A stretch of 63,092 nt of DNA, filler included, from Choristocarpus tenellus KU-1152 (taxonomy: Eukaryota > Protista > Phaeophyceae): the NCBI GenBank assembly GCA_964200185.2. It is 11 parts of 11 records of this genome, joined end to end, with 100 filler letters (N's around TTAATTAATTAA, not from the genome) between each part and the next. Parts side by side here need not be neighbours in the genome. Positions count along the whole stretch, not along the records: positions 22,769 to 25,674 come from CAXNAD020023755.1; 10 more parts are not named here. One strand, given 5' to 3'. Position numbers and translations under genes: made by a program. The first letter of the stretch is position 1. Every line of letters starts with the position of its first letter. Below, piece by piece: positions 21,331-26,816 of this stretch. Under the pieces are notes generated by a model. It made no database searches and was not told the origin of the DNA. It was given only the letters and a program-made list of their open reading frames with translations.

Positions 21331-23098
21331 TTATTTTTTGTCACTTGATGGAACATTGATTAACAGGTGTCAGTGGCGTACACAAGGCTGGTGTCAGGTG
21401 AATCTGGAAGAGACCATGATGGTCCGGGGTGAGTATCTCAGGAAATCATGCCTCAGACCGGATCAGGGTTAGGGTTAGGGTTATGCTGCTTTGGTGTATT
21501 CTTCGTAGTACTTGATGCTAATCACTTGTACTTCAAACTATGTTATGTTTATAGTATACTCTGCAGTTCAGGAATTAATAGTAGAGCTACACTTTGTGCC
21601 AAGCTGGTGATACTCCTGAGGAATCGGAGATTGCTACCAGCAAAATAAGGAGGGGGGGCGGGGTGGCAGGTTGGTATGACGATGTGATTAATACCTCTCA
21701 TAGTAGAATATAGTTTTGCCGTACTGCCCACTCCAATCCATTTTATGCCCTGGCTCTGTACTGTACTGAACTATCTGTGATGACAAGGTTAGAATTACAT
21801 GCTCAGGTGATTCGGGTTAGCGAGTGCCTGTGATATTCCAAATATTATAAAAAAAAAATATATTTTTTGGTCGCGAGATGCGTTATTAAATAATCATATC
21901 TAAATTGGATCGAAAAGTTAAATTCTACTTGTAACCTTTGCTATTTTTTTTAATGTTTATCCGTGTGTTTTTTGTGTGTGTGAAATTCACCTTGACGAGT
22001 CGCCCAAGTGTGAGGCATTGCAATATACTAGGGCAGGCATGTGATTAGTTTTTATTTTTTTATGTGCCAGCAATTGGTTTGGAAAGGTCCAAAAATTTGT
22101 ACTACTATTGTTTTAGTTTTAGCTGCTGGTGTGTAGTGGTAAGTAAGGTAGTATGTCATTCCAAAAAGATCTTTTGGTTCCCTAGCCCTAAGGAGGCTTA
22201 ACCTCAACCCACACCTTCCTTCCCCCTAATCTCAGCTGTTTTCTTGAAACCATCATGTGGTCTTCTTGGGTAAGGGGGCCTGCTCCGCCATGCATGCAGT
22301 GCCTGCAGAGTCTGGTGTTAGTGCCGGGGAGCAGCCCACAAGGGGGCTGTTATTATTGGTTTGGGGAGTTGTAGGGAAGTGAAGGAGGTGTTGGGGTAGG
22401 GTTAGTTGTCCCCAATGGTGACAATACAATAGCTTATATTCTCAATTTAAATTTGAATGGATTTTGTTGTGGTGCATTGTTCCACCAGTTCAATCTAGAG
22501 ATGTTTTGTTGCCCCCCCGCCCCCCCATCCTTCTCCTGTCTCGTAATTTTCACTCTTCCATTTTTTTTTGTGTATGTGTGTGTGTTGGGGGGGGGGGGGG
22601 GCATTATTTTTTGTGTGTTTGTGGGTGTTTGGGGGGGGGGCGGGGGTGGGCGGGGCGGGGGCCGGGGGNNNNNNNNNNNNNNNNNNNNNNNNNNNNNNNN
22701 NNNNNNNNNNNNTTAATTAATTAANNNNNNNNNNNNNNNNNNNNNNNNNNNNNNNNNNNNNNNNNNNNTAGGCCCCCTCACCACAATGCCCCCCCCCCCC
22801 CCCTGAAATGTCATTACTTTTTCTTTGTGTGAGCATTTTGTGTGCGTGATGCTGGCATAACCTTTAGTTGTGTTTTTTCGAGCAGACAAATGTAATACCA
22901 GTTTTTGTCTCAAGGGACATGGGAGAAAGCAGTGTGTATCAGAGGGAGCAAACCGTTCTTGTCGGAGTGGAGTCTTCTATCGTCTCTCTGCTGACACAAA
23001 TTCCCCTCCCTCCCTCCCTCCCTCCCTCCCTCTCTCTCTCTCTCTCAAGGTGTTGATTTTGCTAGTTCTGCAGTTTTGTTTGATGAGTAAAGACCCAC

Positions 23099-23273
23099 CA
23101 GCTGCATCTATCAAAAGCAGATAATACCTACTGCAAGAAGTTGAATGAATATTTAGCTCCAGATTTATTGATACTTGATGAATTAGGATTTAGGGAAGTT
23201 CCTAGTTATTCATCAGATGATTTTTTTGAAGTAATATCTAAAAGATATGAAAACTCATCCTGTATAGTGACCA
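23099..23273 (+). pseudogene. istB: Fragment of bacterial IS21-family helper ATPase IstB
   Basis: QLHLSKADNTYCKKLNEYLAPDLLILDELGFREVPSYSSDDFFEVISKRYENSSCIVT: Walker B (DLLILDELG) plus the IstB FEVISKRYE.S.I.T motif; AT-rich codons; no start codon and no Walker A. Confidence 0.85.
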
Positions 23274-23436
23274 ACTACTATTGAAGGTTTTAATTTTAAA
23301 AATAATACTATAGTATTTATACAGGCTATCACGAGTTGGTAAGTAGATTTTAGCTTATTAAATAGCCCAGACATTTTGATATGTAGATTAGAAATATGTG
23401 GAATAACTGGCATATCTTGAGTTATATATTTTTCAC
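23270..23436 (-). pseudogene. murG: Fragment of bacterial MurG (lipid II GlcNAc transferase), Rickettsiaceae-like
   Basis: EKYITQDMPVIPHISNLHIKMSGLFNKLKSTYQLVIACINTIVLFLKLKPSIVVG, cut exactly before the expected FGGY; resembles the N-terminal domain of rickettsial MurG as I recall it. Confidence 0.65.
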
Positions 23437-24090
23437 CAAGAGGAAAATTCTTTGCGTTTAAATGTCATATTAAATTCTCATGCAAGGTATGATGGCGTTT
23501 ATTCTAGTTATAAGGAAGTTTTTACAGATAATGTGCCCAGGAGAGTTGAAGCCCTCATGCATGACATCAAGATCAGACTTTGCTACTTGGCTGGATGCTG
23601 TGTTTTCTAACCAAGTAGGCTCTGGATGTGAACTTTGCTTTTCCCTTGCAGGTGGTGTTCTCAATCTTAAGGTGCACTGAGCCCTACCTCAATCAGTACT
23701 TCACAGGGGCAGCTGGGTGTTACAAAGAGCTAATCCAGGCTGGCTTTAGCACTGTGAGAGCTTCAGTAGTAAGGACAGTAGCTACAGTCTAACTGCTTGC
23801 TTGAACTCAGTCCGTACAGAGTAAATACCCTGTGATTCAATTCTTATGGAGAGGTGGAGAACGGATATCGACTCAATGATGTCTTTACTTCTATTGTAAG
23901 ACTTCTAACCTTTGTGTTGATTTTTTTTTTTTTACTTCTGGGTGCTGAGACAGTCATTGGTTCATGCTACTCTCTTAATACCTCAGGTGTTCACCAAAGT
24001 TTCAATGCCGCTCCCCTTAATCTCTATATCTGCATTCGTAATGTACGTCACTTAGGGATGCATACATATCTCATATTTACACGAGCGTTC

Positions 24091-24192
24091 AGAGTTAAGA
24101 AGTGTGAATGTGTAAATTAGTAAGAGTTAAGAAGTGTAAATGTTTAAATTAGTAAGAATCAAGAAGTGTAAATATGTAAATTAGTAAGAATC
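24091..24192 (+). repeat. Minisatellite, ~32 bp x3
   Basis: Unit agagttaagaagtgtgaatgtgtaaattagta with variants. Confidence 0.85.
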
Positions 24193-26816
24193 ACACCAGA
24201 GGAGTTTTCGTGTGTCATGTGTAATCAGAAAACTGCATCGAACTCCATTCCTGGAAGTTCATCCCCTATCAAAAAAAGGTCTGAAGTGAAGGTGGTGGAA
24301 GGTATCGAAGGAATTGAAGGTATACCTTATCATGGACATTGAACTAGCCGTGGCAAGACTCGCAACGTTTGAGATCATGAAGGCCTCGGAGGCGAAGACC
24401 TGGGTCAGAAGAGTTTTGGGGTAGAACTCCAAGGTCAGTTCAAGGTGCTGGAACTGGGTGGTTAGACAACGTGGCCATGAAAAAGGAGGTTGCAGGTAGA
24501 TTGCTGACACGAGCTCGACTCTAAGAATCTTCAAATCCAGAGGAGCAACCGGAGCCAAGTGGTCTTGTTACTGAAGACATGGGAGTAGATTCAGATGATG
24601 AGGGATGCGAGGACCCCCACAAGGTTGGGTCTTCAGAAGAGCAGGGATGAGGAGTCTGACATGGGTAGCTGGGTCGGTGGGGGCATTAGGGAGATACTGA
24701 ATGAGAAGGAAAATATTTCATGTGAATTCGTTCTTGTCAGAGGGAACTCAAAGGAGAGTCTGCTGACTAAGGCGGGCATTTAGGGGTGGTCAGCACTAAT
24801 TGCAGAACCATCAAGAAGCGGGCTCTGATCCTGTTGTGGGAGTAGTGGGCTCAAAGTCGATAGGTATGGAGCCCGTACTCTACTTCAATTTGAATTTCCC
24901 CTGATGAGATGGCAGTGGTTGCAAACACTTGCATGAGATTCAGTACAGTAGGTGTCATGCAAGAGTTGCTGACAGCCAGCGTATGTTCATTGCTTTGCTT
25001 CGGATGATGGTCATTCAAAAGCATGTACAGGAGGCAGATGGGTTATAGTGTAAGAGGTGAGGCTGAATTGTGACTTACTCTGCTTCAGGTACCCCTTGGT
25101 ATTTGTGCTGAATGCTGATACTGTGGGAAGTGGGGATGGTAGGGATGGATACCTGGAGAGCCAAGATTGAAGGGCAGAAGAGAAGACCAAGGTTGTCCCA
25201 CCTTGCTCTAGGGGAAGCATGGCAAGCATAGTCCTGACTCCACCTGGTGGTTTGTTACAGTATTGGGCATGGTCAAGACAGATGACATTCACAGCGGGGT
25301 CAGGGTCCTCTGAGGGGTTGATATTTCATGAGGTTCAGCAATGATTACAGGGATGTCATTCACAAAGAGGACTTGGTGTTTGGTTGAAGCTTGGAACAGC
25401 GAATAGTCGTATGTGATCTTGAAATCCATACCTTCCAGTTCCATGAAAGGCTTGGTGGACCCAGCAATAGATAGATAAACACAAATATGATCTCTGACAG
25501 TATGGCAGTGATACACTCCTGATCCTACTCATTAGTCCTCTCAACGTTTGTTTCTCATTGATATATTTGCTCCTAAGTAGATGAATGTGTATTGCCAAAG
25601 ACATGCATTTGTTCTTAATTGTTGCTGGCCCCTCCTTGTCAATTCCCTCACGATCAGTGCTCCCACCCAAACCCNNNNNNNNNNNNNNNNNNNNNNNNNN
25701 NNNNNNNNNNNNNNNNNNTTAATTAATTAANNNNNNNNNNNNNNNNNNNNNNNNNNNNNNNNNNNNNNNNNNNNCAGTGCAACGCCGATGGGGAGGCGGG
25801 GGGGGGGGCACAGTCTGCGGTGTTTCGATGGGTTTTTTTTGGAGGACAGAGACCGTTCTCATCGGTTACATTATAGAGCCGGTGTACTATTTTTTTGCAT
25901 GTGTGTACGCACGCACGCACTGTGGTGAGGTGAGGTGCCTCAGGCACATTTTTCTTTTTCAGTGCCGGTAGTTCGTTGTGTAGCGGTAATAGAGGTAATA
26001 GAGCGTTCTTTTTCTTTTTCTTTTTCTCAAGGAGAACCAAAACCAAAACGAAAGGATTCACGAAGGCATCCACCTCACTCGGTGGGGGACTTTGGAAGGG
26101 ATCCGTCTGGAACGGCGCGCGAGAGATCGACTCTGATTTTTAAAAAATATGTATCTTTTAAGCGAAAAACGAAAAAAAAAAAATGTGAGTAAACAAGACC
26201 GGGCAAAAGGCCGTGGTGGGGGAATGGTCTCAACGCTGCCAATACCTTCTTTTTTTTTCTTCTGACTACTGTACTGCGTGACGCCAACTGCTTCTTTTTC
26301 TTTCTTTTTTAAAATTTCCCTTGTGAGGTGTTGACGGGGTTCGGCTGATACATCAGTACGGAAAAAAATAATAATAGAACAAAAAGAGTGTTTCATAATG
26401 GACAGCCGCCACCCCCTCAGATACTTTGAGCCTCACAGGGAGTGAACATTTGCTTTCCGAAAAAGAAAAATTGCTCTGAGGCAGCTTATCAGGTGGTTTT
26501 ATTCTTAGCTGTTGTGAGCCAAACTGGTAATCCCCCCTGCTCCCTCCTCTCTCTCATTACAAAAAGTGGTTGTGATGCCCTTCATCCTCCTCCAAAACCC
26601 AACTTTCGTTGAGTGTATTCATTCTTATCCACTCAGTCAACCCTCTCTTGACTGGATGGCCGCAGATTTATATGCAACAAATGAGTGATAGCTAACACAC
26701 AAAAAAGAAAGGAAAGATCGAAGTGTATGTTCATGCCTGCAGAATAAATATCTAGTGTCACCTTCTGTCAATATTCCACTCTGCCACTGCCACATGTCTT
26801 GTCACATTCCCCTCAC

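Follow-up and report, generated by a model that had tools for sequence, protein, structure and literature searches.

How did a short run of bacterial coding sequence come to lie in DNA that appears to be eukaryotic? The question is raised by one part of the window, the whole stretch of 63,092 nucleotides from Choristocarpus tenellus KU-1152 (assembly GCA_964200185.2). That part, 2906 bases long (positions 22769–25674), carries an AT-rich patch of 432 bases at 23102–23533, within which GC content is 28.9%, as against 45–50% in the flanks. Followed from left to right, GC content is 50.4% up to 23044, 40% across 23045–23101, and 28.9% in the patch, after which it remains at 45–48% to the end. The patch consists of three adjoining internal gene fragments of approximately 171, 167, and 97 bases, each in a reading frame without stops. 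We lean toward the view that it is a dead, non-functional insert of Rickettsiaceae DNA in a chromosome of the donor's present or former eukaryotic host, captured there by end joining.

Several of these features had been described in a sequence-only reading of the window, and they hold up well. That reading reported a eukaryote-like (CCCT)n/(CT)n tract followed by a turn to AT-rich composition; the tract, (CCCT)10 running into (CT)n, occupies 23004–23044 (Tandem Repeats Finder: period 4, 10.2 copies, 97% matches), and GC content falls from 50.4% to 28.9% beyond it. The limits then proposed for the patch, 23099–23532, differ by 1 to 3 bases from those given here, which were drawn from nucleotide homology, and the reading frames of all three fragments are free of stops, as described. 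Between the microsatellite and the first fragment is a 57-base spacer of 40% GC (23045–23101) that matches none of the related loci compared; it may belong to the host, or be a fourth scrap whose shortness prevents its identification.

The first fragment (23102–23272, plus strand) derives from istB, the helper ATPase gene of IS21-family elements. The frame that opens at 23099 encodes 61 residues matching the Pfam family IstB_IS21 (PF01695; E = 2e-12, 47.6 bits against a cut-off of 24.1) over profile positions 134–192 of 238, as well as the NCBIfam model IS21_help_AAA (NF038214; E = 7.6e-13, 48.7 bits against a full-length cut-off of 200), so that the original assignment of istB to the plus strand stands. 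The fragment retains a Walker B stretch (DLLILDELG) but lacks the Walker A motif, the start, and the native stop, and no istA adjoins, which makes this a fragment rather than a working gene. By residue-by-residue comparison, homology begins at about 23102 and stops at 23272–23275. When 72,556 plasmids were searched with tblastn, the best three matches were plasmids of the Rickettsia endosymbiont of Nesidiocoris tenuis (58–61% amino acid identity), and the next best were gamma-proteobacterial plasmids at 42–44%. At the DNA level only two of those Rickettsia plasmids match, with 73% identity over 142 bases. In a separate observation, one Rickettsia plasmid region (AP029036.1, 85133–91303) holds IS21 istA/istB, an IS200/IS605 tnpA, and an IS5 transposase within 6 kb; given such crowding of mobile elements, fragments of insertion sequences should be abundant raw material in donors of this kind.

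The second fragment (23270–23436, minus strand) is part of murG. By itself it gives no direct Pfam or NCBIfam match, and a search of the PDB returned chance matches only (E = 0.17). A phmmer search of 1.84 billion representative proteins produced four matches, three of them MurG N-terminal domain proteins, with a Glyco_transf_28 protein at the top (E = 1.5e-10). Among bacterial genomes, scanned at one per species, two metagenome-assembled contigs titled Rickettsiaceae bacterium (L004 and L005) match the fragment at 78% and 73% amino acid identity, respectively, over all 55 residues, and at 79% and 80% nucleotide identity over 166 bases. Both matches lie in full-length murG genes (TIGR01133; E = 3e-86 and 4e-87), the one in L005 being located in a murD-ftsW-murG cluster. 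These results uphold the earlier identification of murG on the minus strand. The fragment corresponds to MurG residues 44–98 of 361; it lacks the GGTGGH loop and the C-terminal domain, and it retains nothing beyond "VVG" preceding the FGGYP motif. In an ungapped DNA comparison, identity halts sharply at 23270 and at 23436, while the bacterial gene runs on.

A side observation concerns murG elsewhere. Two ENA metagenome assemblies from different samples contain an identical ftsW-murG contig (L002:1638–2030 and L003:903–1295) in which a Rickettsiales-like murG ends after approximately residue 86 and is followed by sequence weakly resembling PF18962, a type IX secretion C-terminal sorting domain; the resemblance is below threshold (E = 0.0034, 18.1 bits against a cut-off of 27). 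The fusion may be a further mosaic of gene scraps, or the same misassembly made twice.

The third fragment (23437–23533, plus strand), previously noted simply as an open AT-rich piece, can now be named. It comes from the interior of a gene for a divergent polysaccharide deacetylase (PF04748, YibQ-like), covering approximately residues 222–254 of a 364-residue protein, and it is true coding sequence in the frame first proposed. The fragment alone has no Pfam match. A metagenome scan with the open frame recovered 11 loci, with 77–94% amino acid identity over residues 2–32; among the 11, L010 and L017 give 53–58% over longer, weakly extended alignments. Near-full-length matches show 78–84% nucleotide identity over 23436–23533, and 29 of 31 residues are identical to those encoded at L007 and L008. 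The match falls within proteins of 349–364 residues, and the full genes at L008 and L011 match PF04748 at E = 1.5e-33 and 4.3e-36. The contigs concerned have 28–38% GC, and the neighbors of the gene in the related loci are an ORF of about 455 amino acids and another of about 165, which, reading them by eye, we take to be an S41 C-terminal protease and a NUDIX hydrolase. Two other interpretations of this fragment were considered and set aside. It does not come from upstream in murG, since DNA homology to the closest murG genes ends at 23436. Nor does it appear to extend into the right flank: the frame remains open for 25 more codons into GC-richer DNA, to 23607, and one tblastn alignment (to L010) weakly reached residue 53, but homology stops at 23533; beyond that point agreement falls to about 3 of 21 residues and nucleotide identity is lost, so the extension was judged a product of chance.

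The nearest named relatives of the patch are thus members of the Rickettsiaceae, represented by the two metagenome-assembled genomes for murG and the Rickettsia plasmids for istB, in keeping with the affinity to Rickettsiales suggested at the outset. The insert, at 29% GC, can be set beside the 28–38% of the related contigs. We also considered an organellar source and rejected it; the best matches are to bacterial contigs and plasmids, and the genes are bacterial cell-wall and insertion-sequence genes, so the earlier call of a bacterial rather than an organellar origin is sound. The titles under which the closest genomes and plasmids are recorded support, at the family level, a Rickettsiaceae bacterium as the donor of the pieces. 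The genomics paper on Ca. Megaira makes no mention of the accessions of the metagenome-assembled genomes.

How the pieces came together may be read from their junctions. The 3′ end of istB (approximately 23272–23275) meets the 3′ end of murG (23270) in the tail-to-tail arrangement that the sequence-only reading had described, and the bases ACC(AAC) at the join could belong to the end of istB or to that of murG, which amounts to 2–6 nt of possible microhomology. The join between murG and the deacetylase gene, at 23436/23437, is head to head with an overlap of 0–2 nt. Homology breaks sharply at every junction, with an overlap of 0–6 nt. Around the patch there are no direct or inverted repeats, no target duplication, and no terminal repeats, so that nothing points to transposition. 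Transposition of IS21 was examined as the mechanism of insertion and rejected: the patch shares istB with the istA/istB elements of this family, but it holds 57 of approximately 240 codons and has no istA, no element ends or inverted repeats, and no target duplication. An IS21 element did not transpose here; istB is part of the captured DNA.

The three genes are not neighbors in the relatives that we compared. Within 6 kb on either side of the related murG loci, neither istB nor the deacetylase gene is present; within 4 kb of the related deacetylase loci there is no murG; and in none of the related loci does istB adjoin murG or the deacetylase gene. The pieces therefore correspond to separate places in related genomes, which agrees with the initial proposal that fragments of distant loci had been joined directly. 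What is found here is what distinguishes an end-joining mosaic, namely non-contiguous donor fragments joined directly, with little or no microhomology and neither duplication nor terminal repeats. From this junction anatomy we infer that the pieces were probably stitched together during break repair. Three short fragments would have left three separate sites of the bacterial genome or its plasmids, would have been linked one after another in mixed orientation, and would then have been ligated into a chromosome break beside the (CCCT)n/(CT)n microsatellite, most likely by non-homologous end joining as in the mosaic mitochondrial and plastid inserts of nuclear DNA. All being internal gene fragments, the pieces are expected to be without function.

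It is conceivable that the mosaic was assembled in a bacterium, as gene debris beside an IS21 copy in a decaying genome, and was moved (or assembled by the software) as a single block. Plasmids of the Rickettsia lineage are packed with copies of IS21 and other insertion sequences, and a truncated murG fused to unrelated sequence does occur in the two metagenome assemblies. We nevertheless regard such an origin as very improbable: the 171 bases of istB are themselves an internal fragment that includes neither end of the element; every related locus seen has its murG or deacetylase gene intact, with different neighbors; and host-like DNA on both sides would still demand an integration event.

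Capture by end joining in a eukaryotic chromosome, the reading that we favor, has counterparts in better-known systems. Mosaic NUMTs and NUPTs, and the filler DNA found at double-strand breaks, are made of several short, non-contiguous fragments in mixed orientation. The patch resembles the organellar mosaics in its 0–6 nt of microhomology and in the lack of target duplication and terminal repeats, and differs from them in that the donor would be a bacterial symbiont rather than an organelle. Transfers from Wolbachia to the nuclei of insect and nematode hosts have likewise placed Rickettsiales DNA in host chromosomes, often as fragments and mostly in non-functional form. Those transfers involve another donor family and another group of hosts, and many of the inserts are far larger than the patch.

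The closest parallel comes from Volvox carteri strain EVE, whose nuclear genome holds a rickettsial gene-like region that spans about 9 kb and contains nearly complete genes (Kawafune et al. 2015, PLoS One, PMC4324946). The region is a mosaic of truncated rickettsial 16S, murB, ddlB, and ftsQ sequences, confirmed by PCR and by comparison of strains, in which a 412-bp 16S fragment adjoins a truncated murB even though the two are separate loci in the symbiont (PMC4324946). The two cases are alike in that truncated Rickettsiaceae genes lie in eukaryotic DNA (eukaryote-like DNA, for the patch), pieces of separate loci abut, and frames are open; both also draw on cell-wall and division cluster genes, murB, ddlB, and ftsQ in Volvox and murG here (PMC4324946). 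Host-specific repeats occur around and within the Volvox region (PMC4324946), and the patch has a microsatellite in its left flank. Unlike the Volvox region, the patch is built of pieces of only 97–171 bases, includes IS21 and deacetylase fragments, and is as yet a candidate insertion.

The last of these differences bears on a less welcome explanation, that the structure arose in the laboratory or the computer, either because fragments of a symbiont or contaminant were ligated to host DNA during library preparation or because a low-coverage chimeric read was assembled. The contig is only 2.9 kb long, and the assembly appears fragmented. Moreover, an exact look-up of the nine ATG-started ORFs of the piece in a collection of 15 billion proteins found none of them, so no independent assembly of the same structure came to light, nor a second copy of it. 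The anatomy of the patch is harder to reconcile with an accident of this sort. Four joins fall within 432 bases without a shared repeat, unlike the errors of graph assemblers; pieces of 97–171 bases are below the usual insert size of a library, and four ligation accidents would be needed in one molecule; and the same anatomy has been documented for real insertions (PMC4324946). On balance, we think an artefact unlikely, and we infer that the flanks are probably host nuclear DNA and that the pieces were joined within the host, not in vitro.

The flanks themselves look like non-coding eukaryotic DNA, an impression formed chiefly from the features that they lack. The ten longest open frames of 22769–25674 have no Pfam match at E ≤ 0.1, a search of Rfam gave only IS009 at chance level (19.9 bits against a cut-off of 117), and promoter-like and terminator-like sites on the piece are no more frequent than in shuffled sequence. 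The right flank (23534–25674, 45% GC) has a non-bacterial look, contains no recognizable gene by Pfam and Rfam, and matches none of the 72,556 plasmids. No positive host gene or marker was seen on the 2.9-kb piece.

It follows from searches of this kind (Pfam, Rfam, and plasmids) that nothing on the piece links it to a particular eukaryote. The integration could then be real and yet belong to some other eukaryote in the sample, such as a ciliate, an amoeba, or a small animal with Rickettsiaceae, in which case the record of host and symbiont would be misattributed. Rickettsiaceae such as Ca. Megaira are found in ciliates as well as in algae (for example, PMC10132079). There is no positive evidence of a second eukaryote, however, and other pieces of the genome had been judged algal in the sequence-only reading; we consider a misattributed host improbable.

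If the patch is a captured insert, as we suspect, the pattern of substitutions gives some indication of its age. Counted by codon position (first/second/third), the murG fragment differs from its two nearest relatives at 12/0/24 and 11/1/22 sites, and the deacetylase fragment differs from its nearest relatives at 3/0/17, 3/0/15, and 5/0/10 sites; all of these counts depart from an even spread (p = 7e-3 to 4e-6). A comparison of L004 with L005, two living relatives, gives the same pattern (7/1/19). Against the closest references there are no second-position changes at 86 codons, and there are no stops. GC content is still 29%, with no drift toward the 45–50% of the flanks. Taken together, the bias toward third positions, the absence of second-position changes and of stops, and the unchanged GC content indicate that there has been little neutral decay since the sequences left a working genome; a rough estimate by the rule of three puts such decay at a few per cent at most. 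The recent transfer proposed at first is consistent with so little visible decay. The same lack of decay is expected of DNA from a living bacterium, so it fits DNA that was never outside one equally well, and it does not separate integration from artefact.

The capture of symbiont DNA in a host chromosome is already known from Volvox and from insects, and the patch, if real, adds another case, one that shows mosaic capture cleanly and at a small scale. Provided that the junctions are genuine, it would be a lasting genomic record of a Rickettsiaceae symbiont in this eukaryote lineage, even where current cultures have none, and it would join, with its unusually small pieces, the few rickettsial insertions documented outside animal hosts. 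In practical terms, the patch supplies four junction sequences as targets for PCR, and three marker fragments for seeking the donor genome among the raw reads. We can also speculate, more doubtfully, that it is one visible case of a continuing influx, in small pieces, of DNA of an undescribed Rickettsiaceae symbiont into the nuclear genome of a host not known to carry one. Were that so, many more mosaics of 100–200 bases should be scattered across the assembly, there would be a new host-symbiont pair, and breaks would be repaired with symbiont DNA at a high rate.

A few minor features of the flanks deserve mention in their own right. A run of 15 C residues occupies 22789–22803 in the left flank. 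To the right, the segment 24269–25400 has a strong excess of G over C on the plus strand (skew 0.2–0.5), and all three of its open frames of at least 100 codons, none with a Pfam match, lie on the minus strand. This strand pattern is probably compositional; the long open frames of the flanks are all on the C-rich strand and agree roughly with expectation from composition. The right flank also contains, at 24091–24189, a tandem repeat of an AT-rich 32-base unit in 3.1 copies with 91% identity.
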